This document shows, piece by piece, positions 9,731 through 36,357 of a stretch of DNA of 64,000 nucleotides. The translations under genes were made by a program, and so were the position numbers. Below the pieces are notes generated by a model that saw nothing but the letters and a program-made list of their open reading frames with translations, made no database searches and was not told the origin of the DNA. Position 1 is the stretch's first letter; each line of letters starts with the position of its first letter. The DNA is from Heterodontus francisci (taxonomy: Eukaryota). Location of the stretch: NCBI RefSeq assembly GCF_036365525.1, contig NC_090399.1:42316430-42380429 (forward strand), read 5' to 3'.

Positions 9731-10661
9731 TGTTACAACCTCAGTGAGACAGTTAACGTTAAAATATGAGATATAAACCCCCAGACCAGTTTAAAGAATT
9801 ACACAAGATTTCACATTTGAAGATTTTTATTATAACTAAACTAAAGGAAATCCCCATTAACTAAACAGTACTTTGTAAGTAGCTGATACCCCAAATTACA
9901 GGGAAAGGTATTTTATTTATTTATTAAAACACTTGAAAACCTCACACCACACTTATGTTACACCATCATCCTTGATGGTGAAATCGCTGCAGCTAAAAGT
10001 CCCAAACTCCTCCTAGTTGCAATGGGTTGGATCTCCCAGACCTTTCTCAAAGTCAATGTCCTCTTTGCTCACTTCTTCTGAGCACTTTCAACCTGGACGT
10101 CTTTGCATAAGGTGATTTCTGGTGATTCTGTTGGTCTTTTACTTTTCTGCAAACCTCAACTTTCAAAACAGGTTCAAGTCTTTGAAGCCTTTTGCTCTAT
10201 CAGTCTTCTGAGAGCAGGTGTTCTCTCTGTCTTTCCTCTCTGAGGTTGCCACCACTAGTCGTCTTCCTTACAGCCTGCTGGCTTATGAAAATCTGTTGAA
10301 TTTAACTGGAATATAGCCAATTGTCTCTTCCAATATGCAAAGTCCACAATTCTGGCTATAGCAGAGCCACCTGGACTTTCCACTGTTTCTAGGTGTTAAC
10401 AACTGCTATTCATGTTCACATTCTCAGAGTCACTGGCTCCTTGTTTACAATCTGAAAGTCTGGGAGGGTGAAACCCATTGTTCTTCAGGTGTTATAACCC
10501 TGCAGTCTCTGCTTTTCAAAAAAATCTTTGATCTTGGTGCTTTATTGTCCTGGTAACCAAGATCCCCTTCTTGAAGCAGAGTTGATGTGAAGTCACCTGA
10601 CTTTTCCGACTCCATCTTAAACTTTTAAAAATCGCAGTTTTTAAAACATAATCGTGTTACA
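9731..10661 (-). repeat. 5' LTR of the outer gypsy element
   Basis: Bounded by TGTTAC...GTTACA (TG..CA) and directly adjacent to the PBS. Confidence 0.7.
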
Positions 10662-10822: not shown

Positions 10823-10927
10823 AACTAAAGTCTGGCTCCCAGGTTCCTGTTACTGTCTGGATTGTACTTGGGATCCTCGGGCTGATCGTCTTTCTCGCCA
10901 TTGTGGCTGCCATCATCAAGAGGAAAG
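10823..10927 (+). CDS. MHC class I connecting-peptide/transmembrane exon: (E)LKSGSQVPVTVWIVLGILGLIVFLAIVAAIIKRK
   Basis: Acceptor ctctctccaacag, donor gtagga; 105 nt, phase 1-1; ~22-aa hydrophobic stretch followed by a KRK stop-transfer motif. Confidence 0.8.
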
Positions 10928-11540: not shown

Positions 11541-11573
11541 TGACAGAGAAGAGCGGCTACAATCCTACAAAGA
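11541..11573 (+). CDS. MHC class I cytoplasmic exon: (V)TEKSGYNPTK
   Basis: Acceptor tgttttacag, donor gtaagc; 33 nt, phase 1-1, in frame with the TM exon. Same size as class I exon 6 and carries the conserved SGY tyrosine motif. Confidence 0.8.
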
Positions 11574-12246: not shown

Positions 12247-15200
12247 TCTCGTTCCCTCGCTGACACTCGCCCCCACCACTTCCCCTCGTTCCTCAGCCCC
12301 CCACCAACTCCCCTCGCTACCTCGCCAACCCTCGCCCCCACCACTTCCTCCGCTCCCTCGCCATCCATCGCCCCCACCACTGCCCCTCGCTCCCTCGCCC
12401 CCCACCAACCGCCCCTCGCTCCCTCGCCCCACCACCTCCCCTCGCTCCCTCGCCCCCACCACCTCCCTCGCTCCCTCGCCACCACCACCTCCCCTCGCTC
12501 CCTCGCCCCCACCACTCCCCTCGCTCCCTCGCCCCACCACCTCCCCTCGCTCCTCGCCCCCACCACCTCCCCTCGCTCCCTCGCCCCCACCACCTCCCTC
12601 GCTCCCTCGCCCACACCACCTCCCCTCGCTCCCTCGCCCACACCACCTCCCCTCGCTCCCTCGCCCACACCACCTCCCTCGCTCCCTCGCCCACACCACC
12701 TCCCCTCGCTCCCTCGCCCCACACCACCTCCCCTCGCTCCCTCGCCCACACCACCTCCCCTCGCTCCCTCGCCCACACCACCTCCCCTCGCTCCCTCGCC
12801 CACACCACCTCCCCTCGCTCCCTCGCCCACACCACCTCCCCTCGCTCCCTCGCCCACACCACCTCCCCTCGCATCCCTCGCCCACACCACCTCCCTCGCT
12901 CCCTCGCCCACACACCTCCCCTCGCTCCCTCGCCCACACCACCTCCCTCGCTCCTCGCCCACACCACCTCCCCTCGCTCCCTCGCCCACACCCCCTCCCC
13001 TCACTCCCTCGCCCACACCACCTCCCCTCACTCCCTCGCCCACACCACCTCCCCTCACTCCCTCGCCCACACCACCTCCCCTCACTCCCTCGCCCACACC
13101 ACCTCCCCTCACTCCCTCGCCCACACCACCTCCCCTCACTCCCTCGCCCACACCACCTCCCCCCCCTCCGTCGCCCCCACCACCTCTCCTCCCTCCCTCG
13201 CCCTCCCCTCGCCCTCCCCTCGCCCCCCCGCCACCACCTCCCCCCCTCCCTCGCACGCACCTCCTCCCCTCACTCCCACCACCTCCTCCCCTCACTCCCA
13301 CCGCCTCCCCCCGGTCCCTCGCCCCCACCGCCTCCCCCCGATCCCTCGCCCCCACCGTCATCCCCCGCTCCCTCGCCCCCACCGTCTTCCCCCGCTCCCT
13401 CGCCCCCACCGTCTTCCCCCCGCACCCTCGCCCCCACCACTTCCCCTCGCTCCCTCGCCCCCACCACTTCCCCTCGCTCCCTCACCCTCCTCGCCCTCGC
13501 CCCCTCGCCGACACTCGCACCCCCTTCCCTCGCCCCCACAACTTCCACTCGCTCCCTCGCCCCCAACAATTTGCCCCACACCCTCACCCCCACCACCTCC
13601 CCTCGCTGCCACCACTTCCCCTCACTCCCTCGCCGACCCTCGCCCCCACCACTTTCCCTCGCCCCCACCACTTCCCTCGCTCCCTCGCCATCCATCGCCC
13701 CCACCACTTCCCCTCGCTCCCTCGCCGACCCTCGCCCCCACCACCTCATCTCGCTCCCATGCCGACCCTCACCCCCCACCTCCCCTCGCTCCCCCCACCT
13801 TCCCTCATTCCCTCGCCCCCACCACTTCCCCTCACTCCCTCGCCGACCCTCGCCCCCACCACCTCCCCTCGCTCCATCGCCGACCATCGCACCCCCGCCG
13901 ACCCTCGCCCCCACCACCTCCCCTCGTTCCCTCGCCCCAACAACCACCCCTCGCTCCGTCGCCCCCACCACCTCCCCTCGCTCCCTCGCCCCACCACCTC
14001 CCCTCGCTCCCTCGTCCCATCACCTCCCTCGCTCCCTCGTCCCCATCACCTCCCCTCGCTCCCTCGTCCCCATCACCTCCCCTCGCTCCCTCGCCCCCAT
14101 CACCTCCCCTCGCTCCCTCACCCCCATCACCTCCCCTCGCTCCCTCGCCCCCTCCCCCACTCCCCTCCCCCCCCCCCCACCTCCCCCCGCCCCCCCCCAC
14201 TCCACCTCCCCCACCCTCGCCCCCACCTCCCCCCACTCTCGCCCCCCCACTCCCACCTCCCCCCCACTCCCTCGCCCCCCCACTCCACCTCCCCCCACTC
14301 CCTCGCCCCCCCACCCCCTCCCCCCACTCCCTCGCCCCCCCACCACCTCCCCCCACTCCCTCGCACCCCCCACCACCTCCCCCACCACCTCCCCCCCGCA
14401 CCCTCGCCCCCACCACTTCCCCTCGCTCCCTCGCCCCCACCACTTCCCTTCGCTCCCTCACCCTCCCTCGCCCTCGCTCCCTCGCCGACCCTCGCCCCCA
14501 CCACTTCCACTCGCCGACCCTCGCCCCCCCTCTTCCCCTCGCTCCCTCGCCGACACTCGCCCCCCCTTCCCCTCGCCCCCACCAACTTCCACTCGCTCCC
14601 TCGCCCCAACAATTTGCCCCACACCCTCATCCCTCCCTCATTCCCTCGCCCCCACCACTTCCCCTCACTCCCTCGCCGACCCTCGCCCCCACCACCTCCC
14701 CTCGCTCCCACCACCTCCCCTCGCTCCATCGCCGACCATCGCACCCCCGCCGACCATCGCCCCCCACCACCTCCCCTCGTTCCCTCGCCCCAACAACCAC
14801 CCCTCGCTCCGTCGCCCCCACCACCTCCCCTCGCTCCCTCGCCCCCACCACCTCCCCTCGCTCCCTCGTCCCCACCACCTCCCTCGCTCCCACCACCTCC
14901 CCTCGCTCCTCGTCCCACCACCTCCCCTCGCTCCCTCGCCCCCATCACCTCCCCTCGCTCCCTCGCCCCCATCACCTCCCCCTCGCCCCCATCACTTCCC
15001 CCCCACCTCCCCCCACACCACCTCCCCCCACTCCCTCGCCCCCCCCACTCCACCTCCCCCCACTCCACCTCCCCCCACTCCCTCGCCCCCCCACCTCCCC
15101 CCACTCCCTCGCCCCCCCACCTCCCCCCACTCCCTCGCCCCCCCCACTCCCCCCGCCCCCCCCACTCCCCCCACTCCCTCGCCCCCCCCACTCCCCCGCC

Positions 15201-18200
15201 CCCCCCACTCCCCCACTCCCTCGCCCCCCCCACTCCACCTCCCCCACTCCACCTCCCCCACCTCCCCCCACTCCACCTCCCCCACTCCACCTCCCCCCAC
15301 CTCCCCCCCACCTCCCCCACTCCACCTCCCCCACCTCCCCCCACCTCCCCCCACTCCACCTTCCCCCCACTCCCTCGCCCCCCCCCACCACCTCCCCCCA
15401 CTCCCTCGCCCCCCCACCACCTCCCCCCACCTCCCCCACTTCCCCCACTCCACCTCCCCCCACTCCCTCGCCCCCCCCACCACCTCCCCCACTCCCTCGC
15501 CCCCCACCACCTCCCCCCACTCCCTCGCCCCCCCCACCACCTCCCCCCACTCCTCGCCCCCCCCACCACCTCCCCCCACTCCCTCGCCCCCCCACACCTC
15601 CCCCCCACTCCCTCGCCCCCCCACCCACCCCCCCCCCACTCCCTCGCCCCCCCACCACCTCCCCCCACTCCCTCGCCACCCCCCACCCACCTCCCCCCAC
15701 TCCCTCGCCCCCCCCACCACCTCCCCCCACTACCCTTGCCACCCCCACCACCTCCCCCCACTCCCTCGCCACCCCCCACCACCTCCCCCCACTCCCTCGC
15801 CACCCCCACCACCTCCCCCCACTCCCTCGCCCCCCCCACTCCCTCGCCCCACTCCCTCGCCCCCCCCACTCCCTCGCCCCCCCCACTCCCTCGCCCCACT
15901 CCCCCCACTCCCCCCACTCCCTCGCCCCCCCCACCTCCCCCCACTCCCTCGCCCCCCCCACTCCCCCCACTCCCTCGCCCCCCCCACTCCCCCCACTCCC
16001 ACCTCCCCCCACTCCCTCGCCCCCCCCACTCCCTCGCCCCCCCCACTCCCTCGCCCCACTCCCCCCACTCCCCTCGCCCCCCACCTCCCCCCACTCCCCT
16101 CGCCCCCCCCACTCCCCCCACTCCCCACCTCCCCCCACTCCCTCGCCCCCCCCACCTCCCCCCACTCCCTCGCCCCCCCCACCTCCCCCCACTCCCTCGC
16201 CCCCCCACCTCCCCCCACTCCCTCGCCCCCCACCCCCCCACCTCCCCCCACTCCCCCACTCCTCGCCCCCACTCCCCCACTCCCTCGCCCCCCCCACCTC
16301 CCCCCACTCCCTCGCCCCCCCCCACCCTCCCCCCACTCCCTCGCCCCCCCCCCCACCTCCCCCCACTCCCTCGCCCCCCCCCTCCCCCCACTCCTCGCCC
16401 CCCCCCTCCCCCCACTCCCTCGCCCCCCCCCACCTCCCCCCACTCCCCCCACCTCCCCCCTCCCCCCACTCCCTCGCCCCCCCCACCTCCCCCCACTCCC
16501 CCCTCCCCCCACTCCCTCGCCCCCCCCACCTCCCCCACTCCCTCGCCCCCCCCCTCCCCCCACTCCCTCGCCCCCCCCACCTCCCCCCCCTCCCCCCCCA
16601 CCACCCACCTCCCCCCCTCCCCCCACTCCCTCGCCCCCCCCCACCTCCCCCCACCTCCTCGCCCCCCCCCCTCCCCCACCTCCTCGCCCCCCCCCNNNNN
16701 NNNNNNNNNNNNNNNNNNNNNNNNNNNNNNNNNNNNNNNNNNNNNNNNNNNNNNNNNNNNNNNNNNNNNNNNNNNNNNNNNNNNNNNNNNNNNNNNNNNN
16801 NNNNNNNNNNNNNNNNNNNNNNNNNNNNNNNNNNNNNNNNNNNNNNNNNNNNNNNNNNNNNNNNNNNNNNNNNNNNNNNNNNNNNNNNNNNNNNNNNNNN
16901 NNNNNNNNNNNNNNNNNNNNNNNNNNNNNNNNNNNNNNNNNNNNNNNNNNNNNNNNNNNNNNNNNNNNNNNNNNNNNNNNNNNNNNNNNNNNNNNNNNNN
17001 NNNNNNNNNNNNNNNNNNNNNNNNNNNNNNNNNNNNNNNNNNNNNNNNNNNNNNNNNNNNNNNNNNNNNNNNNNNNNNNNNNNNNNNNNNNNNNNNNNNN
17101 NNNNNNNNNNNNNNNNNNNNNNNNNNNNNNNNNNNGCCCCCCCCCCACCTCCCCCCCCTCCCCCACCTCCCCCCCTCCCCCCACTCCCTCGCCCCCCCCA
17201 CCTCCCCCCACTCCCTCGCCCCCCCCCCCACACTCCCCCCCCCCCACCTCCCCCCACTCCCTCGCCCCCCCCCCACCTCCCCCCCTCCCCCCACTCCCTC
17301 GCCCCCCCCCCCACCTCCCCCCCTCCCCCCACTCCCTCGCCCCCCCCCCACCTCCCCCCACTCCCTCGCCCCCCCCACCTCCCCCCCTCCCCCCCCCCCA
17401 CCTCCCCCCACTCCCTCGCCCCCCCCCACCTCCCCCCCTCCCCCCACTCCCTCGCCCCCCCCCACCTCCCCCCACTCCCTCGCCCCCCCCCCCCACCTCC
17501 CCCACTCCCTCGCCCCCCCCCCACCCTCCCCCCCTCCCCCCCCCCCACCTCCCCCCACTCCCTCGCCCCCCCCCACCTCCCCCCCTCCCCCCACTCCCTC
17601 GCCCCCCCCCCACCTCCCCCCACTCCTCGCCCCCCCCCCACCTCCCCCCCTCCCCCCACTCCCTCGCCCCCCCCCCACCTCCCCCCCACTCCCTCGCCCC
17701 CCCCCCCACCTCCCCCCCTCCCCCCACTCCCTCGCCCCCCCCCCCACCTCCCCCCACTCCCTCGCCCCCCCCCCCCACCTCCCCCCCTCCCCCCACTCCC
17801 TCGCCCCCCCCACCTCCCCCCACTCCCTCGCCCCCCCCCCCCACCTCCCCCCCTCCCCCCACTCCCTCGCCCCCCCCACCTCCCCCCACTCCCTCGCCCC
17901 CCCCCCACCTCCCCCCCTCCCCCCACTTCCCCCCCACCTCCCCCCACTCCCTCGCCCCCCCCCCCCACCTCCCCCCCCTCCCCCCACTTCCCCCCCACTC
18001 CCCCCACTCCCTCGCCCCCCCCCCCACCTCCCCCCCTCCCCCACTTCCCCCCCACCTCCCCCCACTCCCTCGCCCCCCCCCCCACCTCCCCCCACTTCCC
18101 CCCCTCCCCCCACTCCCTCGCCCCCCCCCACCTCCCCCCACTCCCTCGCCCCCCCCCACCTCCCCCCACTCCCTCGCCCCCCCCCCACCTCCCCCACTCC

Positions 18201-18390
18201 CTCGCCCCCCCCCCACCTCCCCCCACTCCCTCGCCCCCCCCCACCTCCCCCCCTCCCCCCACTCCCTCGCCCCCCCCCCACCTCCCCCCACTCCCTCGCC
18301 CCCCCCCCACCTCCCCCCACTCCCTCGCCACCTCCCCCCACTCCCTCGCCCCCCCCCCCCACCTCCCCCACTCCCTCGGCCACCACCTCC
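12247..18390. repeat. C-rich (G-rich on the minus strand) low-complexity minisatellite, units ~24-28 bp such as CTCCCTCGCCCCCCCACCTCCCCCCA; includes a 440-N gap at 16696-17135
   Basis: Seen directly; starts immediately after the alpha2 splice donor. Confidence 0.95.
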
Positions 18391-18396
18391 ACTCAC

Positions 18397-18669
18397 CAAC
18401 ACTCAGTTCTCGCTGTCCGTACTGCAGAAATTTCTTCAGCCATTCAATACACATAACCTCCAGGCTGTGTTTGCATTGCTGTTTGTTAGCGCTGTTCTGG
18501 TTCCACTTGCTTTGGATGCCCTTCCCCCAATGGACCGGAGTCTCCCACACAATGTTATCCTTGTCAAAGGTCATGAAGTCTCGTCCGTCCCATCCCCTCT
18601 GAGCAAACGCAGTCCTGGTCCCATCATCCCGCAGCTCACAGCCGAATTGGATCTGGTACGTGTGGATCC
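18397..18669 (-). CDS. MHC class I alpha2 domain exon (non-classical)
   Basis: GIHTYQIQFGCELRDDG...GWDGRDF...KW...CIEWLKKF; C101-C164 pair present; acceptor ttgacag, donor gtgagt; 273 nt, phase 1-1. Confidence 0.95.
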
Positions 18670-18684
18670 CTGTCAATCAGGCGC

Positions 18685-18905
18685 ACACAGCCAATAAAGC
18701 AGACCCGCCTGGGAGGCCACGCCCACTATTGCACAGCCAATCAAAAGCAGTATCACCGGGAGACCCCGCCCACTACCTCAGCCAATCAAACTCTTCTAAG
18801 TGGGAGACCCCGCCCACTACCTCAGCCAATGAAAACTGGCCTCACTGGGAGACCCCGCCCACACTGCCTGTCCCACATCTCCTGGGGAGCTGCGGCTATT
18901 TAAAG
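18685..18905 (+). promoter_or_regulatory. Intronic ~45-bp tandem array of CCAAT and GC boxes ending in a TATA-like box
   Basis: CCAAT at 18691, 18737, 18782 and 18826; CC(A/C)CGCCC at 18717, 18764, 18808 and 18853; TATTTAAA at 18897-18904. Function is inferred only. Confidence 0.4.
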
Positions 18906-19190
18906 GGCCCCTTTGTATTTTAAGGACATCGCGTTTGCCAGTCTTTGGATAAATGTTCATGAAGTGATGTGAGGCCGCTCGCTTTGACTGCCGGCTCTGC
19001 TCTGCTCTGGGAGACGGAGCCATTGCCCCATCCCCGCTCGCTTTGACTGCCGGCTCTGCTCTGCTCTGGGAGACGGAGCCACGTTTCTTGTTATCCTGGC
19101 TCCCGCACTATTCCCGACTTTTCCCCATCCCCGCCCGGATCCCTCAGCCCACAGAAAGAGGCAGAGTGAGGCGGAAGGGTGAAGACTCAC

Positions 19191-19433
19191 CTTCCGACTG
19201 GTTGGACTGGGATGTGAGTATTGGAAGGTCGATTTTAGAATACAGCTCCTGCCTCTGCATCCAGGACTCCGGCCCCTCGCTTTCCAACATCCACTGCTCC
19301 CGGGGAATCAACTGCTTCCGATCGCTGTCGTACATAACAAACTGGACATCGTCAACATAACCAACACCCACAAACTCCGGGAAACCGGGAATCGGAGTCA
19401 TGCGGGTAGCGAAATACCGGAGAGAGTGAGAGC
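19191..19433 (-). CDS. MHC class I alpha1 domain exon (shortened helix)
   Basis: GSHSLRYF...[20 protein letters not shown]...PREQWM...NQS (N86 glycosylation sequon); acceptor ttttcag, donor gtgagt; 243 nt, phase 1-1. Confidence 0.95.
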
Positions 19434-19616
19434 CTGAAAAACAAAGAGAAACATCAGGACACAAACCCCAAAACACCAATATAAGAAATTGTAGTTTTAA
19501 GGATATTATTAAATTACTAGAAATAGTTGTAGGAGAAATGCTGGGACTTTGTCTTCTTAGCAAAGGTTCTTTCTTTCTCTCTCACTTCAAGCAATTCTCC
19601 AACTATATGCTCAAGG

Positions 19617-22455
19617 TAAGAACATAAGAAATAGGAGCAGGAGTAGGCCATTCGGCCCCTCGAGCCTGCTCCACCATTTATTAAGATCATGGCTGATCCG
19701 ACTGTGGCTTTAACTCCACTTTCTTGCCACCACCACCCCAGTAACCTTTTGACTCCCTGGAGGATCAAAAATCTATTTCACTCGGCCTCCACTGCTGTCT
19801 GGGGAAGAGAATTCCAAAGATTAACAATCCTCCGAGAGAAGAAATTCCATCTCATCTCCATCCTAAAAGGGAGACCCTTTATTTTGAATACGTGTCCTCT
19901 AGTTCTAGATTCCCCATGAGGAGAAACATCCTTTGAGCATCAGCCCTGTCAAGTCCCTCAGAAACATATGTTTCAATAAGATCACCTAAATCATCTAACT
20001 GCAATAAGTATAGGCACAACCTGCTCAACCTTTGCTCGGAAGACAAACCCCTCATCCCAGGAATCAACCTAGTGAACCTTCTCTGAACTACTGCCAATGG
20101 AGGTATATCACTCCCTCAGCAAGGAGGGCAAAATTATACTGAGTAATCTAGGTGCAGTCTCAGCAATGGCCTGTACAATTGTAGCAAGATTGCCCTATAT
20201 ATTCCATCCTCCTTTCAATAAATAGCAAAATTCCAATTGCCTTCCTAATTACTTACTTACTACTTACATGCTAACTTTTTGGGATTCATGTACAAGAACA
20301 CCCAGCTCCCTCTGTACCGCAGCTTTCTGCATTCTCTGTTTTTTCATTCACAGGATGTGGGTATTGCTGGCTAGACCAGCATTTATTGCGTATCCCTAAT
20401 TGCCCTTGAGAAGGCGGTGGTGAGCTGCCTTCTTGAATCGCTGCAGTCCTTGGAGTGTAGGTATGCCAATAGTGCTGTTAGGAAGGGCGTTCCAAGATTC
20501 TGACCCAGCGACAGAGAAGGATTGGCAATATATTTCCAAGTCAGGATGCTGTGTGGCTTGGAGGGGAAATGCAGCTGGTGGTGTTCCCATGCATCTGTTG
20601 CCCTTGTCCTTCTAGGTGGTAGAGGTCACGGGTTTGGAAGGTGCTGTTGAAGGAGCCTTGGTGATTTGCTGCAATGCATCTTTTAGATGGTGCACACTGC
20701 TCCGAATAAATAATCTGCTTTTCTATTCTTCCTGCCAAAGTGGCTAATCTCACATTTTCCCACTGTTACAACCAGGTGAGAAAGGTGTCTAGGGGTTTTT
20801 TACGGTCTTCACCTGGTCTTATTATAACAGACTTTAATTTTAAATGCACTGTGTTTTGAGCTTCTCCCTTTGTGAATCCTTGTTCACAGTTTTCCAATTA
20901 TATGGCAAAGAAATTTGCATAAACAGGCTTCCTTAGGTGTAAAGAAGAAAAGTGTAATTTATTAAACCTTAAACTGAAACTCTAATATGGTTAATGCTGA
21001 TGGATACACGATGTGTCCACGCCAGCATGCACACACGATACACACATGCAAATAGGGACAGAAAAGAGTAGAAGAAAAATAAAATGGAGAGGTTTGAGGC
21101 AGTCTCTAAAGGGTATTTTTTTGTTACTGTTTCTGTGGCTGCAGCTTGCTGTAGAGTCCTTGATTGTAGACAGCTCTTACTTTTCATTGTAAGAGCTTAA
21201 ATCTTGTTCACTGCAACAGACTTTTCTATCTTGGGATTCAGATGTCTTCAGTGCTTCCGAAGCTGGTGAAAGCGAGATTAGAGCAGGCAGGAGAGGTGTT
21301 CTCAGTCCAGGAGCTAACAGCCTTCTGATTTTCAAACATTCTGTTGGAAACTCTAATTCAAAAATCTCTAACAGTCAGTCAGTCATGTGACCAAACTGTT
21401 CTGACCACATCTGTTTGTGTATTCGGCCATCTTAGTAGTTATGGAATGCTTCAATGTCTGGTAATCAAAAGTGGATTAAATTGGAGCAGGGAACAGCTCC
21501 TTTGTTCTTTGAAGTACTGTCTGTGGATATGTTAATGTCTCTCTCCAGCCAAAGATTTCAATAGTTTTTTAAAGTAAGTTCTATCTTCACCATCAGCAGT
21601 TTAAAATCAATGTTCATGCGATGAAATGATTTTTCCTCCTTTCTTGGCAGGTAGGGTTTGCCTGACACCACATTATACTCCATCTGCCAAATTTTTGTCC
21701 ACTTACTTAACTGATCCATATCCCTTTGCAGACACTTTGTCTTCCTCACAACTCACTTTCCTAGCTATCTTTGAATTGTCTGTAAATTTGGCTACAATAC
21801 ACTCACTCCCTTCATCCGTCATTAATATAGATCGTAAATACTTGAGGCCCCAGCACAGATCCCTGTGGCAATCCACTAGTAACAGTTTGGCAGTCTGAAA
21901 ATGCCCCATTTATCCCGACTATCAATTTCTTATTAGTTAGAAATCCTCTATCTATGCTAATATATTACCCTCAACACCATCAGCTGTTATCTGTTTAGTA
22001 ACCTTTTATGTGGCACCTTATGGAATGACTTTTGGAAATCCAAATACACTAGATCTACTGATTCCCCTTTATCTACCCTGCCTGGTACATCCTTAAACAA
22101 CTCCAATGAATATGTCAAACACAATTTCAGGTTCATAAAACCATGTTGACTCTGCCTGATTTGTATTATGATTTTCTAAATGTCCTACAACTACTTCCTT
22201 AATGCCGGATTCTAGTATTTTCCCAATAACAGATGTTGGGCTAACCGGCCTACAGTTTCCCACTTTCTGACACCACCCCCACCAAAACTTTCTTGTATAG
22301 GGGTGTTACATTTGTAGTTTTCCAATTCGCTGGGACTTTTCCAAAATCTAGGGAATTTTGGAAAGTTACAACCAATGCATCCATTATCTCTGCAGCCACT
22401 TACTTAGAGATACTAAGATGCAGGCCATCAGGTCCAAGGGACTTGTCAGCCTTTA
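19617..22455 (-). mobile_element. Old CR1 LINE 3' portion, interrupted by an L2-like 3' fragment (~20343-20700) and a solo LTR
   Basis: CR1 3' tail (aagaacataagaaataggagcaggagtaggccattc) and RT remnants (VQRRFTRLIPGM, AKFTDNSKI). Confidence 0.8.
20764..21667. mobile_element. Solo LTR (gypsy type)
   Basis: TGTTACA...CTGACA termini with 4-bp TSD CCAC (20760-20763 / 21668-21671); host CR1 sequence rejoins across it. Confidence 0.8.
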
Positions 22456-22474
22456 ATCAACAGCCAAGATGGAT

Positions 22475-23100
22475 TGTATTTGCCAGTTGATCGTTGTCTA
22501 AATTACCTAGCTGGAGACATAGCTCTGCCAGGCACATGCCTTTGTGTGGAATATACCTGGCCCAATCAGATGGGGCCTCATACCCATATATCTAAATGAC
22601 TATCTGGTGAAACTAATGAGATGACTTCAAGGGCTGGGCACTGAAAAAGGTGGGGTTTTCATTACGTACCTGTCTCTGAACAACTGGATAATTGGAATGG
22701 GAAGATGTAACCAAACGAGTGATTGGAATGGGACAACCACCAGCCCTAAAAATAGAGTATATAAACAAGCTGTTCAAAAGGAAAAAAAGGACAGGTTGAA
22801 GGGAGGAGGCGCTTTAGGGTTGCTCGCTTCCAGTTAACACCCTGATCAGCCTGAAGGGGTGAAAGTGGTTTAAGAGATCGTTACAGTAGGGGGCAGTGGC
22901 CAAGCCATTCTGTCTGTCCAATCCACGAACTGTATGCCTTCTCAGCTGTCAGGGGTCATATGTCTACTATAGCGATTCGGATGATGTGTTGTATTTGAAC
23001 TGTAACTTCTCAATAAACTGCATTTAAACCTTTAAACTGAACCACTTGTGACTGCTCAACTCTTCTGAATAATCTGTTACTCGTGATCAAATCTTACGCA
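22475..23100 (+). mobile_element. Possible solo LTR-like element
   Basis: TG...CA ends, internal TATATAAA (~22758) and AATAAA (~23012); no TSD verified. Confidence 0.35.
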
Positions 23101-23634
23101 ATCATCAAAGAGAGTTCAGAGCATGAACTCCAAAACACCAACCCCACACAGAGAGACACATCAGAACATGACCCCCAAATACCAACCTCACAGAGAGACA
23201 GGTATCTGGGCATGAACCCCAAAACACCAGCCCCACAGAAAAAGAGACATCAGGGCATGAACCCCAAAACACCAGCCCCCCACAGAGAGATATCAGGGCA
23301 TGAACCCTAAAACATCAATGCCACACCTCCAAACCCACAAAGAGAGAAAGAGGTGTCCATACCCCACAATCTCCCTCCCCAACCTCCGACCGTGCTCTCT
23401 AAGCCTGTGATCTCCCTCCCCAAAATCTCACTGGCCTCCCCATCAGAGACTCTGTGAACTCATGCCTCACCTGTTCCTCCTCCAGTCCCCCCACAATCTA
23501 ACCTAATTTGGGGGTCATGTCCTGATGTGTCTCTCTGTGTGGGGTTGGTGTTTTGGAGTTTATGCTCTGAACTCTCTTTGATGATTGTGTAAGATTTGAT
23601 TATGAGTAACAGATTATTCAGAAGAGTTGAGTAG
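23053..23634. repeat. ~128-bp inverted repeat (23053-23180 vs 23506-23634) with a ~39-bp minisatellite in the loop
   Basis: CTCAACTCTTCTGAATAATCTGTTACTC...CATGACCCCCAAA is the near reverse complement of TTTGGGGGTCATG...GAGTAACAGATTATTCAGAAGAGTTGAG. Confidence 0.85.
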
Positions 23635-23638
23635 TGAT

Positions 23639-23930
23639 GGGCGGCGCAGTGGTTAGCACCGCAGCCTCACAGCTCCAGGGACCCGGGTTCGATTCTGGGT
23701 ACTGCTTGTGCGGAGTTCTCCCTGTGTCTGTGTGGGATTTCGCTGGGTGCTCCGGTTTCATCCCACATCCAAAGACTTTCAGGTGATAGGTAAATTGGCC
23801 GTTGTAAATTGCCCCTAGTGTAGGGAGCTGATAGGGAATATGGGATTACTGTAGGGTTAGTGTAAATTGGTCGGCACAGACTCGGTGGGCCGAAGGGCCT
23901 GTTTCAGTGCTGTATCTTTAAATAAATAAA
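23639..23930 (+). mobile_element. tRNA-derived SINE, HE1/V-SINE-like
   Basis: A-box-like GCAGTGGTTAGC, B box GGTTCGATTC, V-domain-like core (GGAGTT..CTCCCTGTGTCTG..GGGTGCTCCGGTTTC..CCCACATCCAAAGA), CR1-like tail GGGCCGAAGGGCCTGTTTCAGTGCTGTA followed by TAAA repeats. Confidence 0.85.
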
Positions 23931-24139
23931 ATTACCTGGAACTTGGTGCACTAACCTTTCAATACATTAAAGGTGATATATAAATATAAATTATTGTTAT
24001 AATCTGTGTGGCCTCCTCCTGCAGCATCATCTACAATATGATGAGCTCTGAGACCCAAAATCTGCAGCTTCTTGGAGCTCAGCATTGGAGTGCGGACTGT
24101 TAACACCATGTGAGGTGGGGGAGCTCTTGAATATAACCC

Positions 24140-25045
24140 CAGAGAATTTTATATCGAAGTTTGCTGTCGACACTAAGTCGGGTGGCTCAGTAAATTGTGT
24201 GGACAGGAGGCAGGAAGTTACAAAGAGACACTGACAGATTAAATGAATGGGCAAAACTATGGAAGATGGAGTTCACTGTGGGGAATATGAGATCATCCAC
24301 TTTGGGTCCAAGAAAGATAAATGGGTATATTTTCCATCCGGTGGGAAACTTGAACCTGGGGAGAGCAAATGGAGAAATCATTACAGACCTGTGGACAGGG
24401 ACAATAAGGATTTGGAAAGCTGGCCTTTATCTTGAGGGGACTGCAATACAAAGGGGTGAAAGTTATGTTCCAGTTTATATAAAGCTCTGGTCAGACTCCA
24501 TCTGGAGTAACTGTGTTCAGTTCTGGGCCCCGGACCTCAGGAAGGATAGATTGGTCTTGGGGAGAGAGCAACACAGATTCACCAGAATGATCCTGGGAGT
24601 TAGAGGGTTAAATTACGAGGCCATGTTGTTTAGACTCGGCTTGTATTCTCTCCATTATGGAAGATTGAAGGTGATGTGATCGAGGTGTTTAAAATGTTAC
24701 AAGGATTTGATAGAATCAATATGAAGAAACGATTTCCCCGAGTGGGGGAATCAAGAACGAGGAGACATAATCTTAAAATTAGAGCCAGACTGTTCTGGAG
24801 TGAAATCAGGAAGCACTTCTTCACACAAAGAGCAGTGGAAACCTGGAACTCTCTTCCCCCAAAAGGCTGTGGATACACGGGATCAATTGATGCTTTCAGA
24901 GCTGAGATAGACTTTTGTTGGATCAGTGTCTCGACGGAGATTGAGCAAACGTAGGAAAATAGAGTTGAGACATAGATCAACCATGATCTAATTGAATAAT
25001 GGAACAGGCTCAAGGGGCTGAATACTCTACTCCTGTTCTTATGTT
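24140..25045 (+). mobile_element. CR1 LINE 3' fragment
   Basis: LQRDTDRLNEWAKLWKMEF, CVQFWAP, FFTQRAVETWNSLP; tail ctactcctgttcttatgttc. Confidence 0.85.
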
Positions 25046-25199
25046 CCTCTCTCTCCATCTCTCCTGCCCCATATCCCTGTCCCTCAGTCCGCTGTCCACA
25101 CCCTGCTCCCACCGTGGTCTCTCCTTCTCCAGCCCCAGTACCGAGCCTGCTCCCGTCTCCTTCAGACTCCATTACCCACTGAGCAAGGGGAAATGCTCC

Positions 25200-27265
25200 G
25201 GTAAAAAGAATAACAGGGAAGGTGAAGGGTAGGGGAGATTAAATGACAAAAGGGTTGATGGTGGAAAGCCAAAGGGAGTGGCAATGGGACAAGTAAAGAA
25301 ACAAAAGTTGAGTCTGGAGGTGTAAATGACGGAATCATGAACAGCTGCTTCCGAAAGCAAAAACAATAGAAAAACGAGTTAAAATCAAAATCTGCAAAAA
25401 AAAAGGAAACAAGAAAGGGGCCAGAGATGACAATCTGAAATTGTTGAACTCAATGTTGAGTCCAGAAGGCTGTAAAGTGCCTCAATGAAAGATGAGGTTC
25501 AGTTCCTCGAGATTCAATTGAGCTTCATTGGAACAGGAAGCCGAAGACAGAGAGATCAGAGTGGGAGCAAAGCGGAAAATTACAATGGAAGGCTGCTGGA
25601 AGCTCGGGATCCTGCTTGCAGATTGAACAGAGGTGTTCTGCAAAGCAATCACCCAATCTGCATTTCATCTCCCAAATGTAGAGCAGACCACATCGTGAGC
25701 AGTGAATACAGGAGACTAAATTGAAAGTACACAAAAATTGCTCTTTTACCTGGAAGGACTCTGTGGCCTTGGAAAGTGAGAAGGGAGGAACTAAATGGAC
25801 AGGTGTTACATCTCCTGTGCTTGCAACGGAAAGGGGCCCAGGAAAGGGGAGAGGCTGTTGGGGGTGATTGAGGAGTGGACCAGGGTGTCGTGGAGGGAAC
25901 TGTCCCTTTGGAATGTTGAAACCGGAGGGGGGAGATGCATTTGGTGGTCGTATCATGCTGGAGGTGGTTCAAATGGCCAAGGATGATCTGTTGAATACGG
26001 AGGCTGGTGGGGTGAAAGGTGGGGACAAGGGGAACTTCATCATGGTTCTGGGAGGGGAAGGGGTGAGGGCAGAAGTGCAGGAAATGGGACGGACACGGTG
26101 GGGGGACTCCTTGGTTGAGGAAAAAGGAAGACATATCGGAAGCATTGGGATGAAAGGTTGCATCATCAGAACAGATATGATGGAGACGGAGAAACTGGGA
26201 GATTGAAATGGAGTCGGAGTGTGAGGAAGAGTAATCGAGTTAGCTGAAGGAATCAGTGGGCCTATTGTGAATATTGGCTGATTGTCTCCATTCCTGGATG
26301 TAGGCTGAGAGGTCAGGGAAGGGAAGAGTTGGAGATGCAATATGGGAAGGTGAGTGAAGGGTGGAAATTGGAAGTTGATGCAATTTTCCAGATCAGTGTG
26401 ATATCAGGAAATGGCACCAATACACTTTGTTTCCAATTTCCACTGATGAAAGGTCACAGACCTGAAACTTTAACTCTGTTTCTCTCTTCACAGATGCTGC
26501 CAGACCTGCTGTGCATTTCCAGAACTGTTTTAATTTCAGATTTCCAGCATCTGCATTATCTTTTATTTTAGCGATTTAATTAAAGCTCTTTCAATCTAGT
26601 ATACTGTATTCACTGCTCAGAATGTGATCTCCTCTGCAATGTGGAGAAAGCAGATTGGGTGACCGCTTTGCAGAACATCTCCATTCAGTTCGCATGCGTG
26701 ACCCAAGCTTCCCGTTCCGTTATTTTAATTCTCCACCTTGCTCCCACTCTGACATCTCTGTCTTCAGCCTCATACACTGTTTCAATGAAGCTCGAGGAAC
26801 AGAACCTCATCTTTCAATAAGGCATTTGACAGCCTTCCAGACTCAACATTGAGTTCAACTATTTCAGATTGTAATCCCTTCCTTTTTCTTTGCGGGTTTC
26901 AGTTTTACTTTTGTTTTTATTCCTTTTCTTTGCTTTAGAAGGGCAGGTTTTCATGATTTTGCCAATCACACCTCCTCTTTACTTGTCCCATTACCACTCC
27001 CTTTGGCCTTGCAGCAACAACCCTTTTTTTCATTTAATCCCTTCTCCCGTCCACCCGATTACAGACATTCCCTTTTGCTCTATTTCCAACCTTCCCCGTT
27101 CCACCTGCTTAAACCCGATTACATTCCGAACATTTCCCAGTTCTGACAAAAGGGCATCGATCTTAAACGTTGGCAGTTTTGGCATCATCTGTAGAGAAAT
27201 TGTTGAGTATTTCCAGCATTTTCTATTTTTATTCAGATTTCCAGCAACCACAGTATTTTGCTCTT
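25200..27265. mobile_element. Penelope-like element remnants (GIY-YIG endonuclease) in both orientations
   Basis: Minus strand NLVSCIHCSRCGLLYIWEMKCRLGDCFAEHL (25525-25956) and PLVPTFHP; plus strand GDRFAEHLHSVR (26655-26852). Confidence 0.75.
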
Positions 27266-27269
27266 GTAT

Positions 27270-27392
27270 TGATGCCCCAGTATCCAGCCTGGCACTGTCC
27301 CTCTCACACCCCATTACTCACTGACTGAGGATTAATGCCCCAGCACCCAGTCTAGCACTATCCCTCTCACACACCATTATTTACTGACTGAG
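27270..27392. repeat. 63-bp minisatellite, segment 1 (~2 units)
   Basis: GCCCCAGTACCCAGTCTGGCACTGTCCCTCTCACACCCCATTACTCACTGACTGAGGGTTAAT-type units. Confidence 0.85.
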
Positions 27393-30175
27393 AACAACAA
27401 AGAACAAAGAAAATTACAGCACAGGAACAGGCCCTTCAGCCGTCCAAGCCTGTGCCGATCCAGATCCTCTATCTAAACATGTCGCCTATTTTCTTAGGGT
27501 CTGTATCTCTTTGCTTCCTGCTCATTCATGTATCTGTCTAGATACATCTTAAAAGAAGCTATCGTGCCCGCGTCTACCACCTCCGCTGGCAACGCGTTCC
27601 AGGCACCCACCACCCTCTGTGTAAAGAACTTTCCACACATATCCCCCCTAAACTTTTCCCCTCTCACTTTGAACTCGTGACCCCTAGTAATTGAATCCCC
27701 CACTCTGGGAAAAAGCTTCTTGCTATCCACCCTGTCTATACCTCTCATGATTTTGTACACCTCAATCAGGTCCCCCCTCAACCTCCGTCTTTCTAATGAA
27801 AATAATCCTAATCTACTCAACCTCACTTCATAGCTAGCGCCCTCCATATAAGGCAACATCCTGGTGAACCTCCTCTGCACCCTCTCCAAAGCATCTACAT
27901 CCTTTTGGTAATGTGGCGACCAGAACTGTACGCAGTATTCCAAATGTGGCCAAACCAAAGTCTTATACAACTATAACATGACCTGCCAACCCTTGTACTC
28001 AATACCCCGTCCGATGAAGGAAAGCATGCCGTATGCCTTCTTGACCACTCTATTGACCTGCGTTGCCACCTTCAGGGAACAATGGACCTGAACACCCAAA
28101 TCTCTCTGTACATCAATTTTCCCCAGGACTTTTCCATTTACTGTATAATTCACTCTTGAATTGGATCTTCCAAAATGCATCACCTTGCATTTGCCCTGAT
28201 TGAACTCCATCTGCCATTTCTCTGCCCAACTCTCCAATCTATCTATATTCTGCTGTATTCTCTGACAGTCCCCTTCACTATCTGCTACTCCACCAATCTT
28301 AGTGTCGTCTGCAAACTTGCTAATCAGACCACCTATACTTTCCTCCAAATCATTTATGTATATCACAAACAACAGTGGTCCCAGCACAGATCCCTGTGGA
28401 ACACCACTGGTCACACGTCTCCATTTTGAGAAACTCCCTTCCACTGCTACTCTCTGTCTCCTGTTGCCCAGCCAGTTCTTTATCCATCTAGCTAGTACAC
28501 CCTGGACCCCATGCGACCTCACTTTCTCCATCAGCCTACCATGGGGAACCTTATCAAACGCCTTACTGAAGTCCATGTATATGACATCTACAGCCCTTCC
28601 CTCATCAATCAACTTTGTCACTTCCTCAAAGAATTCTATTAAGTTGGTAAGACATGACCTTCCCTGCACAAAACCATGTTGCCTATCACTGATAAGCCCA
28701 TTTTCTTCCAAATGGGAATAGATCCTATCCCTCAGTATCTTCTCCAGCAGCTTCCCTACCACTGAGTTCAGGGTCACTATAATAATGCTATAATTACCTG
28801 GATTTTCCCTGCTACCCTTCTTAAACAAGGGGACAACATTAGCAATTCTCCAGTCCTCCGGGACCTCACCCGTGTTTAAGGATGCTGCAAAGATATCTGT
28901 TAAGGCCCCAGCTATTTCCTCTCTCGCTTCCCTCAGTAACCTGGGATAGATCCCATCCGGACCTGGGGACTTGTCCACCTTAATGCCTTTTAGAATACCC
29001 AACACTTCCTCCCTCCTTATGTCGACTTGACCTAGAGTAATCAAACATCTGTCCCTAACCTCAACATCCGTCATGTCCCTCTCCTCGGTGAATACCGATG
29101 CAAAGTACTCGTTTAAAATCTCACCCATTTTCTCTGACTCCACGCATAACTTTCCTCCTTTGTCCTTGAGTGAGCCAATCCTTTCTCTCGTTACCCTCTT
29201 GCTCCTTATATATGAATAAAAGGCTTTGGGATTTTCCTTAACCCTGTTTGCTAAAGATATTTCATGACCCCTTTTAGCCCTCTTAATTCCTCGTTTCAGA
29301 TTGGTCCTACATTCCCGATATTCTTTCAAAGCTTCGTCTTTCTTCAGCCTCCTAGACCTTATGTATGCTTCCTTTTTCCTCTTAGCTAGTCTCACAATTT
29401 CACCTGTCATCCATGGTTCCCTAATCTTGCCATTTCTATCCCTCATCTTCACAGGAACATGTCCCTCCTGCACGCTAATCAACCTCTCTTTAAAAGCCTC
29501 CCACATATCAAATGTGGATTTACCTTCAAACAGCTGCTCCCAATCTACATTCCCCAGCTCCTGCCGAATTTTGGTATAGTTGGCCTTCCCCCAATTTAGC
29601 ACTATTCCTTTAGGACCACTCTCGTCTTTGTCCATGAGTATTCTAAAACTTACGGAATTGTGATCACTATTCCCAAAGTAGTCCCCTACTGAAACTTCAA
29701 CCACCTGGCCGGGCTCATTCCCCAACACCAGGTCCAGTATGGCCCCTTCCCGAGTTGGACTATTTACATACTGCTCTAGAAAACCCTCCTGGATGCTCCT
29801 TACAAATTCTGCTCCATCTGGACCTCTAACACTAAGTGAATCCCAGTCAATGTTGGGAAAATTAAAATCTCCTACATCTTTCCATAATCTGTTTACATAT
29901 TTGTACCTCTATCTCACGCTCGCTGTTGGGAGGCCTGTAGTACAGCCCCAACATTGTTACTGCACCCTTCCTATTTCTGAGTTCTGCCCATATTGCCTCA
30001 CTGCTCGAGTCCTCCATAGTGTCCTCCTTCAGCACAGCTGTGATATCCTCTTTGACCAGTAATGCAACTCCTCCACCCCTTTTACCTCCCTCTCTATCCC
30101 GCCTGAAGCATCGATATCCTGGGATATATAGTTGCCAATCATGCCCTTCCCTCAACCAAGTCTCAGCAATAGCAA
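27393..30175 (-). mobile_element. Relatively young CR1 LINE ORF2 (endonuclease with internal deletion, plus RT)
   Basis: 585-aa and 158-aa ORFs separated by one stop: KSPGPDG, QHGF, YMDFSKAFDKVPH, GVPQGSVLGPLLF, KFADDTK; tail (ttctttg)n. Confidence 0.95.
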
Positions 30176-30184
30176 TTACTTATT

Positions 30185-30736
30185 AAGGGTTAAGCCCAAG
30201 TACCCAGTCTAGAACTGTCCCTCTCACACACCATTACTCACTGACTGAGGGTTAATGCCCCAGTACCCAGTCTGGCACTGTCCCTCTCACAATCCATTAC
30301 TCACTGACTGAGGGTTAATGCCCCAGTACCCAGTCTAGCACTATCCCTCTCACACCCCATTACTCACTGACTGAGGGTTAATGCCCCAGTACCCAGTCTA
30401 GCACTATCCCTCTCACACCCCATTATTCACTGACCAAGGATTAATGCCCCAGTACCCAGTCTAGTACTATCCCTCTCACACCCCATTACTCACTGACCAA
30501 GGATTAATGCCCCAGTACCCAGTCTAGCACTATCCCTCTCACACCCCATTACTCACTGACCGAGGGTTAATGCCCCAGTACCCAGTCTAGAACTGTCCCT
30601 CTCACAATCCATTACTCACTGACCAAGGATTAATGCCCCAGTACCCAGTCTAGCACTGTCCCTCTCACACACCATTATTCACTGACTGAGGGTTAATGCC
30701 CCAGTACCCAGTTGGCTCTGTGTCTCACACCCCATT
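30185..30736. repeat. 63-bp minisatellite, segment 2 (~9 units)
   Basis: Direct tandem repeats of the same unit. Confidence 0.9.
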
Positions 30737-32646
30737 AAGAACATCAGAAATAGGAACAGGAGTAGGCTATTCGGCCCCTCAAGCCTGCCCTGCCAATCAA
30801 TAAGATCACGGCTGATCTGCCCAAGACCTCAACTCCTCTGCCATGCCAGCTCCTCATAGCCCTCAACTCCCCAATATTTCAAAAATCTACCTCTTTTTTA
30901 AATACTTTCAGTGATCTAGTCTCCACAACTTTCTGGGGGAGAGAATTCCAGACATTCACTACCCTCTGAGAGAAGAAATTCCTTCGCATCTCAGTTTTAA
31001 ATGAGTGTCCCCTTATTCTGTAACTATGTCTCCTAGTTTGAGATTCCCCCACTAGTGAAACATCTTCTCAACATCTACCCTGTAAAGCCGCCTCAGTATC
31101 TTGTACCTTTCAATAAGATCACCCCTCATTCTTCTAAATTTCGAATGAATAAAGGCCTAACCTGTTTAGCTGTTCTTGATAAGTCAACCCCTTCATCCCA
31201 GGAATCAGCCTCGTGAACCTCTTTTGAACTGCCTCCAATGCCAGTAAATCCTTTCATAAATACGGGGACCAAAATTAGACGCAGTACTCCAGGTGCGGTC
31301 TCACCAACACCCGGTACAGTTGTAATAAGATTTACCTATTTTTAAACTCCAACCCCCGAGCAATAAAGGCCAAAATTCCTTTTGCCGCCTTAGTTACTTG
31401 CTGCACCTGCATGCTAACTTTGTGTTTCATGCACAAGAACACCCAAATCCCTCTGTGCATTTAAATAATAGTCTGCCTTTTGATCTCACACTTCCCCACA
31501 TTAAACTCCATCTGCCAGGTTTTTGCCCACTCACTCAACCTATCTATATCCCCTTTCAGATTCCTTATGTCCTCATCACAACATGGCTTCCCACCTATTT
31601 TGTATCATTAGCAAATTTGGATATATTACACTCTGCTCCCTCCTCCAAGTCATGAATATAGATAGTAAATAATTGAGGCCCCAAGCCTGATCCTTATGGC
31701 GCTCCATTAGTTATGTATTTCCAACCTGAAAAAGACCCATTAATCCAGAATCTGTCTTCTGTGAGTTAACCAATCCTCAATCCATGCTAATACATTACCC
31801 CCAATACCATGAGCTCCTATCTTGTGCAATAATCTTTTATGTGACACCTTATCAAATGCCTTCTGGAAATCTAAATACACTCCATCTACCGGTTCCCCGT
31901 TATCCCAAATAACTCTAGCAAATCTGTCAAACATGATTTCCCTTTCACAAAACCATGTTGACTCTGTTTGATTACGTTAAGCCTTTCTAAATGTCCTGCT
32001 ATTTCTTTCTTAATAATGGACTCCAGCATTTTCCCAATGACCGATGTTAAGCTGACTGGCCTGTAGTTTCTTGCTTTTTGTTTCCCTCCCTTCTTGAACA
32101 GGGGCATCACATTAGTGGTTTTCCAATCCGCTGGACCCTCCCAGAATCCAGTGAGTTCTGGAATATTTCGACCAATGCCTCCACTATCTCTGCAGCCACC
32201 TCCTTTAAAACCCTTGGATGTAGGCCATCAGGTCCTGGGAACTTGTCTGCCTTTAGCCCCATTAGTTTGTCAAATACTTTGTCCATCGTGATAGAGACTG
32301 TTACAAGATCTTTCCTCCCATTAGCTCCTTGCTTATCTGATATCTGTGGGATGTTTATAGTGTCCTCCACCGTGAAGACTGATGCAAAATACTGGTTTAA
32401 ATTATCTGCCATTTCCCTGTTCCCCGTTATCAGTTCTCCAGTTGCATCCTCCAAGGGTCCCACACTCACTTTAGCTACTCTCTTTTTATATATCCGTAGA
32501 AGCTCTTGCTGTTTGCTTTTATATTTTTTGCCTATTTACTTTCAGAATCAATTGTCTCCCTCATTATTAGCTTTTTAGTCATCCACTGCTGGTTCCTAAA
32601 AAATTCCCTGTCGACTGGCCGACCATTAGTTTTTGCTGCTTTTTTA

Positions 32647-35600: not shown

Positions 35601-35840
35601 CTAGGCCATTTCAGAGGGCATGTAAGAGTTACCCACATTGCTGTGGGTCTTGAGTCACATGTATGCCAGACCAGGTAAGGACAGCAGATTTCCTTCCCTG
35701 AAGGACATTAGCGAACCAGATGGGTTTTTACAACAATCGACAATGGTTTCGTGGCCATCATTAGACTAGCTTTTAATTCCAGATTTATTAAACAAATTCA
35801 AATTCCACCTTCTGCTGTGGTGGCATTCGAACCCATGTCC
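32647..35840 (-). mobile_element. L2/CR1-superfamily LINE (APE + RT) with a tRNA/Deu-SINE-like 5' head and no ORF1
   Basis: PDIVIFTESYL, WVGDFNVHH, SDH, NYRPISLLS, DIKAAFDRVWH, GVPQGSVLGP, MFADD; 5' B box GGTTCGAATGCC (~35818-35829); tail ends in (TGAA)n. Confidence 0.85.
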
Positions 35841-36357
35841 CCAGAGAAATACCCTGGGTCTTTGTATGCCTTAGTTTTTGATTGGATACTCTCCTTGACT
35901 GCCTTTGTTAACCATGAGTGGTTCATCGTTCTCATCAGGTCCTTCTTTTTGGCCGCGATAAATTTTTGCTGAGCATTATGAAATATTTGCTTAAATGTCT
36001 GCCACTGCTCATCCACTGACCTTCCTGTGAGTCTATTTTCCCAGCCCGCTTTAGGCAACTCTTTCTTCATACCTCCGTAATTGCCCTTGTTTAAGTTGAG
36101 GACACTGGTTTGAGACCCGAGTTGCTTGCCCTGAAACTGAATTTGAAATTCTACCATGTTGTGATTGCTACCCCCTAGAGGATCCTGAACTACGATATCT
36201 CTTATTAATCCTACCTCATTGCACATTACTAGATCTAAAATAGCCTGTTTCTTGGTAGGTTCTGCAACGTATTGCTCTAAGTAACAATCCCTGATGCACT
36301 CTACAAATTTCTCTCCCATGTTATCTCTGCTAATCTGATTTGTCCAGTCAATATTAA

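Follow-up and report, generated by a model that had tools for sequence, protein, structure and literature searches.

Sharks are the oldest living vertebrates with a major histocompatibility complex (MHC), and one large family of shark MHC class I genes is UBA. UBA has been described as an expanded, UAA-derived family of class Ib genes, attributed to Bartl 1997, with UEA as the second expanded family (PMC12562908), and as a cluster with multiple copies in the MHC of elasmobranchs (PMC10751288). The mouse class Ib molecules T10 and T22 carry in-frame deletions in the groove domains (3 residues in alpha1 and 12 residues in alpha2) and fold with beta2-microglobulin (beta2m) without peptide (PMC2196254). 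Here, we analyse a class I gene in a 64,000-nt stretch of the genome of the horn shark Heterodontus francisci (contig NC_090399.1, positions 42,316,430 to 42,380,429; the whole stretch is referred to as the window). An original prediction for this locus had proposed a class I gene of the non-classical type with a shortened alpha1 helix and a rebuilt binding groove. We conclude, with a probability of about 0.7, that the gene is an expressed, non-classical member of the UBA family that belongs to a young trio of paralogues, has lost six residues of the alpha1 helix and does not clamp peptide termini in the classical way.

The two exons in question are the ligand-binding half (alpha1 and alpha2) of a non-classical MHC class I gene. 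Each exon has an open frame, an acceptor that consists of a pyrimidine tract and ..tttcag, and the donor GTGAGT; the predicted borders were exact, and the open frames and canonical phase-1 splice sites are as claimed. In Pfam, both exons matched MHC_I (PF00129) above the curated cut-off of 28.3 bits, alpha1 with 57.3 bits (E=2e-15; 80 residues over profile positions 2-88) and alpha2 with 64.8 bits (E=1e-17). The best match to a solved structure was, for both exons, the classical UAA molecule of the nurse shark, PDB 6LUP (E = 8e-23 for alpha1 and 6e-27 for alpha2). Moreover, the exons have the cysteines of the alpha2 disulfide (C101-C164) and the phase-1 layout with one exon per domain that are expected of class I. 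The cysteine pair and the N86 sequon (NQS) of the original prediction were confirmed in the anchor alignment, and Q115 and D122 are present in the alpha2 translation; an additional cysteine near position 156 in alpha2 had not been mentioned. In an alignment of ~60 shark class I proteins, alpha2 has the usual shark length of 89-90 residues.

Over one common span, alpha1 comprises 80 residues in the window gene versus a uniform 86 residues in other shark class I proteins. From W60 to the asparagine of the NQS sequon, there are 20 positions in the window gene versus 26 in 6LUP and ~55 other full-length shark class I proteins. HMMER, BLAST and MAFFT all placed a single six-residue gap directly after W60-M-Q, and the gap was also single in the comparison with 6LUP; the predicted in-frame loss of about six residues in the alpha1 helix is, thus, borne out. 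Where the window gene reads WMQRQE, the undeleted paralogue XP_067865800.1 reads WMQKTELMQRQE, i.e. the lost hexapeptide is that in brackets in WMQ[KTELMQ]RQE. The presence of Met-Gln on both sides of this hexapeptide suggests slippage between copies of ATGCAG: as judged from the protein, the 18-nt loss, which postdates the origin of the trio and cost the long alpha1 helix six residues in its N-terminal third, most likely occurred by slippage between two such Met-Gln repeats.

Among the ~60 shark proteins, only the window gene and the H. francisci protein XP_067865917.1, a RefSeq model in which the deletion was already present, are carriers. A search with the alpha1 exon in a set of 5.8 billion proteins gave one Mustelus fragment and no protein with the deletion. 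We also examined sequencing runs from the same sample, of which X5 is DNA and X1-X3 are labelled RNA only by guess but behave as RNA. RNA-like contigs (X1 record 4, 19195-19300; X2 record 12) as well as a DNA contig (X5 record 23) crossed the deletion site without a gap.

XP_067865917.1 (P0001) was the best match to the alpha1 exon in a scan of 1.84 billion representative proteins, being 96% identical and having the same gap. A search with XP_067865917.1 led to XP_067865800.1 (P0175), also from H. francisci, which is complete from leader to tail and has no deletion; RefSeq annotates both proteins as 'MHC class I-related gene protein-like'. The window gene's own protein was not found among the proteins on record. 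In alpha1, the window gene is 96% identical to each of the two paralogues; in alpha2, it is 88% identical to XP_067865917.1 and 87% identical to XP_067865800.1. In total, it differs from each of them at 3 alpha1 positions and 11-12 alpha2 positions. Residues specific to the window copy include Y25, Y64 and D68 in alpha1 and W55 and I74 in alpha2.

Trees were built separately for each exon from a set in which labelled reference sequences of UCA, UDA, UEA, UFA and UGA were not included. In the alpha2 tree, the window gene, P0001 and P0175 formed a trio (support 100/100, stem 0.55) inside a clade of 33 rows (99/80) with the Bartl-1997 cDNAs O19480 of H. francisci and O19479 of the nurse shark; further rows of this clade are multicopy genes from Mustelus, Scyliorhinus, Carcharodon, Cetorhinus, Stegostoma and other sharks. 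In the alpha1 tree, the 33-row clade had a support of 84 and the trio of 99, and the trio was nested with the H. francisci (Hefr) rows O19480, P0177 and P0178 at 91. The UAA-type rows (6LUP, Triakis and Hefr P0211) were apart from the window gene in both trees. We take O19480 and O19479 to be the genes named Hefr-19 and Gici-11, respectively, and these names are part of the basis for the UBA label. Based on the grouping with O19480 and O19479 together with the published descriptions of the family (PMC12562908, PMC10751288), we file the window gene under UBA, a label that rests on the first of these, a review, and on the assignment of the two names to these cDNAs.

The original prediction had left the choice between a divergent UAA-derived paralogue and an unrecognised sublineage. 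The non-classical character of the gene stands; a direct UAA paralogue and a new sublineage are not supported, because the gene is nested with O19480 and O19479 inside a described UBA-type clade and apart from UAA. A known lineage that shares the deletion, which would have spoken against the original prediction, was found in part: the lineage is known, but only two of the ~60 proteins have the deletion.

At least nine H. francisci RefSeq models of the UBA-type clade are located on one 74.5-Mb chromosome. When compared with the other horn-shark UBA genes, XP_067865917.1 and XP_067865800.1 are 74-77% identical in alpha1, 55-58% in alpha2 and 94-95% in alpha3, and the window exons are 76-79% identical in alpha1 and 58-60% in alpha2. 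Thus, the groove domains of the trio have diverged fast, alpha2 most, while alpha3, the domain for beta2m and the co-receptor, has been held near-constant. Together with the trees, these identities point to a young, Heterodontus-specific trio of paralogues. The terminal alpha2 branch of the window gene has a length of zero, suggesting that the window copy is the least derived of the trio. P0001 is grouped with P0175 in the alpha2 tree but with the window gene by the deletion; this conflict hints at exchange between paralogues or at a very short internode. In the DNA run, X5 record 23 (19039-19344) is a second version, from the same individual, of alpha1 and the start of intron 2 with 98.7% identity, and its differences are exactly those of XP_067865917.1 (19242 A>G, i.e. 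Y64H; 19230 C>A, i.e. D68Y; and 19270, synonymous). XP_067865917.1 is, thus, the other allele or else a paralogue of very recent origin.

For the residues that anchor the peptide termini, all eight calls of the original prediction were right: Y7, K146 and W147 are kept, while Y59S, R84Q, T143I, Y159S and Y171F are changes. With three of the eight residues, the window gene does not have the set that defines classical class I (UAA), and of the four A-pocket tyrosines it retains Y7 alone (Y59, Y159 and Y171 are replaced). Almost all of the UBA-type clade shows T143I and a replacement of Y59 (by A, S or F). Among the horn-shark UBA rows, R84Q and Y159S/N are found in the trio only, and Y171F and the cysteine at ~156 are found in the trio and in XP_067865791.1. 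Position 147 is W in the window gene and C and L in the two paralogues.

In the RNA-like runs X1-X3, the summed word depth was 10^3-10^4 in exon bins versus ~50-130 in intron 2, i.e. ~100-fold higher in exons; these data are from one individual and unnamed tissues, and contig depth cannot rank expression. By contrast, the depth in the DNA run X5 was flat at 2-15. A joint from 18668 to 19190 that skips 521 nt between CT..AC (GT..AG on the gene strand) was present in X1, X2 and X3 and absent from X5. Based on the difference in depth between exons and intron and on this RNA-only GT..AG joint, we conclude that the window exons are transcribed and spliced and that the gene is expressed. Contigs with zero differences (X1 record 4; X2 records 8-10 and 12-14) span the deletion site as well as the residues that separate the window gene from both paralogues. 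Past the alpha2 donor, a zero-mismatch X2 contig reads (G)TC GCC CCC GTC GTG TCC TTT ACC CGT CCG G, i.e. VAPVVSFTRPG, which is the start of a UBA alpha3 domain. Similarly, past the alpha1 acceptor, a loose end of X2 at 19436 runs into GAGGGGTCTCTG+CAG, which is the end of the leader (..GGVSAG). Lack of expression, which would have spoken against the original prediction, is therefore not what was observed for the alpha1 and alpha2 exons in the RNA-like runs.

As proxies for the structure of the gene product, we used AlphaFold2 models of the RefSeq paralogues XP_067865800.1 and XP_067865917.1, generated with a 48-sequence family alignment. In the model of the undeleted XP_067865800.1, the alpha1 helices have 7 and 28 residues (predicted local distance difference test score (pLDDT) 83.5); in that of the deleted XP_067865917.1, they have 5 and 21 residues (pLDDT 75.6, dropping locally at the deletion). 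Both models have the same alpha2 helices, of 12 and 29 residues. A fold search with a paralogue model returned 6LUP first and MR1 chains next. When the sequence is aligned to 6LUP and to class I molecules of mammals, the deletion is at residues 61-66, which line the A and B pockets.

The loss of Y59, Y159 and Y171 together with a deletion at the A and B pockets implies that the hydrogen-bond cage for the peptide N-terminus is gone, and canonical N-terminal anchoring of peptides by the product of the window gene is unlikely judging by these models. R84Q and T143I would weaken the other end of the groove, where K146 and W147 stay. The shorter long helix of alpha1 in the deleted paralogue model (21 residues versus 28) and the loss of most of the residues that clamp the termini support the earlier claim that this groove cannot bind peptide termini conventionally. 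We infer that the groove end for the peptide N-terminus is open or collapsed; the ligand would then be atypical, i.e. N-terminally unanchored peptides or non-peptides, or there would be none, and the protein might serve as a beta2m-associated recognition element for innate-like T cell or natural killer (NK)-type receptors. A more specific version of this scheme is a 'half-groove' class I molecule, recently born and expressed, in which two turns of alpha1 were lost by slippage, three A-pocket tyrosines out of four were replaced, the N-terminal end is open or absent, and the K146/W147 part of the clamp is kept; such a molecule would present N-terminally overhanging or otherwise atypical ligands or would be ligand-free like T10/T22, with diversifying selection among the trio. 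We regard this version as rather doubtful and put it forward only tentatively.

The features of the locus are listed in Table 1.

Table 1. Features of the class I locus and its surroundings in the 64,000-nt window
Feature	Coordinates	Strand	Description
alpha1 exon	19191..19433	minus	243 nt, phase 1; encodes (G)SHSLRYF...SNQSE(G); high-depth RNA-like contigs match it with 0 differences
Site of the 18-nt in-frame deletion	19255..19260	minus	One ATGCAG (MQ) copy remains; junction ambiguous within the copy; based on protein alignment with XP_067865800.1 and XP_067865917.1
Intron 2	18670..19190	minus	521 nt; removed in RNA
alpha2 exon	18397..18669	minus	273 nt, phase 1; encodes (G)IHTYQIQFGCELRDDG...QYGQRELSV(V); matched by RNA-like contigs X2 records 8-10 with 0 differences
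Leader (signal-peptide) coding part	41595..41645	minus	MIGLIVLVLLCGGVSAG; donor GTGAGT at 41594; 17/17 tblastn identity to the leaders of XP_067865800.1, O19480 and P0178
Putative intron 1	19434..41594	minus	22.2 kb; contains tandem arrays derived from splice sites
Start of intron 3	12247..18396	minus	27/54-bp minisatellite; N gap 16696-17135 (440 N); no alpha3 assembled
Connecting-peptide/transmembrane (TM) exon, inverted	10823..10927	plus	(E)LKSGSQVPVTVWIVLGILGLIVFLAIVAAIIKRK; 35/35 identity to the TM of XP_067865800.1; splice sites read
First cytoplasmic exon, inverted	11541..11573	plus	(V)TEKSGYNPTK
Remnant of the alpha3-TM intron	10004..10313	plus	tblastn match to the read-through tail of XP_067865917.1 (78% identical over 78 aa)

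The leader exon, which reads ATG...GGAGGGGTCTCTGCAG followed by gtgagt and is preceded by CCAAT-type motifs, is the only leader exon in the window and is located 22.2 kb upstream of alpha1 on the same strand. Leaders are identical among the paralogues, and this one is probably exon 1 of the window gene. Within putative intron 1, a 63-bp array of 19 copies (40391-41596) starts exactly at the leader donor, and the donor-like GTGAGTAATGGG recurs in each unit. Another array built of this 63-bp unit (30186-30737; 8.8 copies) lies 10 kb deeper in the intron, and no second leader exon was found beside this array at 30.2-30.7 kb. A 45-bp array (23109-23326; 4.9 copies) is located 3.7 kb upstream of alpha1, and its unit resembles the pyrimidine tract before the alpha1 acceptor (31/36 bases). 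Upstream of the leader, a 45-bp satellite with the unit AACAGGTGGCTGTGTGTCCATGTGCACTGCTCTGATGGGTGCAGG (at least 435 copies, 92% identity) begins at a distance of 2.8 kb and fills 44409-64000, running past the end of the window.

In intron 2 (18680-18910, plus strand), four tandem units that each contain a CCAAT box plus a GC box (..ccgcccac..cagccaatca..) precede TATTTAAAG; the module resembles a promoter and is directed antisense, toward alpha1. Intron 2 contigs from the RNA runs have one unit fewer (joint 18757 to 18802) as well as two single-nucleotide polymorphisms that are also present in DNA reads.

The minisatellite in intron 3 (12355-18375) is rich in C on the plus strand and in G on the gene strand, and it is derived from the first ~40 nt of intron 3 after the alpha2 donor. 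On the transcribed gene, G-quadruplexes or R-loops might form in this repeat, which probably explains the assembly break; in addition to the gap listed in Table 1, there are N gaps at 11671-11999 and 12047-12246. GC-rich simple repeats have been mentioned in a nurse-shark class I gene (PMC1513397). The plus-strand 3' exons are possibly the result of an inversion with alpha3 hidden in a gap, of a misoriented contig, or of a separate plus-strand relic. Open reading frames of retroelements fill 1-9990.

Several observations weigh against an intact, functional UBA gene. An Ig-C1 regular expression, tblastn queries with five full-length relatives and a search for 30 nt of the RNA-derived start yielded no alpha3 exon in the 64-kb window, and no TM or cytoplasmic exon was found in the window downstream on the gene strand. 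The homology of the intron remnant ends at ~10000 at retroelement sequence (six-frame reading of 9600-10330), with no alpha3 before the remnant. XP_067865917.1, as modelled in RefSeq, has no leader and reads through into the intron instead of the TM, and W, C or L at the normally invariant W147 together with an unpaired extra cysteine would also fit relaxed constraint. Finally, the Logan contigs used here cannot resolve identical copies and, where paralogues have 31-mers in common, may run from one into another, and thus the alpha2-alpha3 and leader-alpha1 links are not proven for the window locus. The gene could, therefore, be a transcribed but decaying duplicate, i.e. a 5' fragment (leader, alpha1 and alpha2) that originated by inversion or rearrangement in a birth-and-death cluster, whose open frames would be no more than a sign of youth and in which the deletion and the anchor losses are neutral. 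The missing alpha3, the inverted TM and cytoplasmic exons with their intron cut at ~10000 by retroelements, the incompleteness of the other deletion-bearing model, the variation at position 147 and an alpha2 difference of 12-13% among very recent copies would all be accounted for in this way. However, both exons are open with perfect splice sites, and RNA contigs specific to the window gene are abundant and show splicing at either end of both exons, also into the start of alpha3. This alpha2-alpha3 junction in RNA favours an alpha3 exon that exists but is unassembled and that would begin GTCGCCCCCGTCGTG.. on the minus strand, and the three N gaps in intron 3 could hide an exon of 276 nt. Moreover, the paralogues combine diverging alpha1 and alpha2 domains with an alpha3 that is 94-98% conserved, which is how a molecule in use evolves, and five of the 12 alpha2 differences from XP_067865800.1 are at canonical groove positions (99, 114, 116, 147 and 159), an enrichment that is weak (p = 0.035-0.09, and up to 0.2 depending on the position list). 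On balance, we consider a decaying duplicate unlikely, though deserving of serious attention, and favour an expressed UBA gene with a shortened alpha1 helix.

The same family placement bears on the idea that the trio represents an undescribed class I lineage, or a direct offshoot of UAA, that is specialised for a non-peptide ligand. The alpha2 domains of the trio are about equally far from other UBA (55-60%) and from UAA (53-58%) and sit on a long stem, the automatic NCBI name is 'MR1-like', and MR1 chains were the next-best structural matches after 6LUP. Nevertheless, the trio is nested with O19480 and O19479 in both exon trees (alpha2 99/80; alpha1 84-91), the leader, alpha3 and TM are near-identical to those of ordinary horn-shark UBA genes, half of the anchor changes were inherited from the clade of O19480 and O19479, and a pocket signature of the lipid or metabolite type was neither tested for nor seen; a separate lineage is, in our view, highly improbable. 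As for the six-residue gap itself, the locus adjoins assembly gaps and minisatellites, and an artefact of assembly or alignment might be suspected. But no indel is present where independent RNA-like contigs of three runs and a DNA contig span the site, the independent RefSeq protein XP_067865917.1 has the same gap, and HMMER, MAFFT and BLAST agree on one gap at one spot, making the probability of an artefact close to negligible. The UBA gene with a genuine six-residue loss, accordingly, is the reading that we retain.

Indels and the loss of anchor residues are common in class Ib genes. The window gene does not define a new lineage; it is a structural variant within the known UBA family, of a sequence type already present in an uncharacterised RefSeq model. 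For these reasons, the finding is of specialist interest and not surprising. What the trio offers is a matched natural experiment: closely similar paralogues with and without the six-residue deletion, differing at normally invariant groove positions, with at least one of them abundantly transcribed. A comparison of deleted and undeleted forms would bear on the extent of helix and tyrosine network that the class I fold needs for ligand binding, and the trio may be a first functional handle on a UBA sublineage.

Among described systems, the window gene groups in the trees with the shark UBA family (O19480/AAC60348 of H. francisci and O19479/AAC60347 of Ginglymostoma cirratum; Bartl et al. 1997). 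It shares with this family the multicopy nature, the location on the MHC-bearing chromosome (at the same-chromosome level only), the clade-wide loss of Y59 and T143I, and identical or near-identical leader and TM exons; moreover, the alpha3 start VAPVVSFTRPG read in RNA matches O19480. Unlike other members, it adds the deletion, R84Q and Y159S as well as Y171F and the cysteine at ~156, the latter two also being present in XP_067865791.1, and alpha2 of the trio is only 55-60% identical to that of other UBA members. Its nearest relatives are XP_067865917.1 and XP_067865800.1; it is neither of them and alone keeps W147. With the nurse shark UAA molecule (6LUP), it shares the fold, the disulfide and the N86 sequon; by contrast, UAA is ~53-58% identical and keeps all eight terminus-binding residues and a full-length alpha1 helix. 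T10 and T22, class Ib ligands of gamma-delta T cells, resemble the window gene in that the groove is disabled by deletion, a functional analogy that on the shark side is drawn from sequence and models. They are unrelated to it by descent, and their main deletion is in alpha2, on the F-pocket side, whereas the window gene has lost residues of the alpha1 helix, on the A/B-pocket side, and retains K146 and W147.

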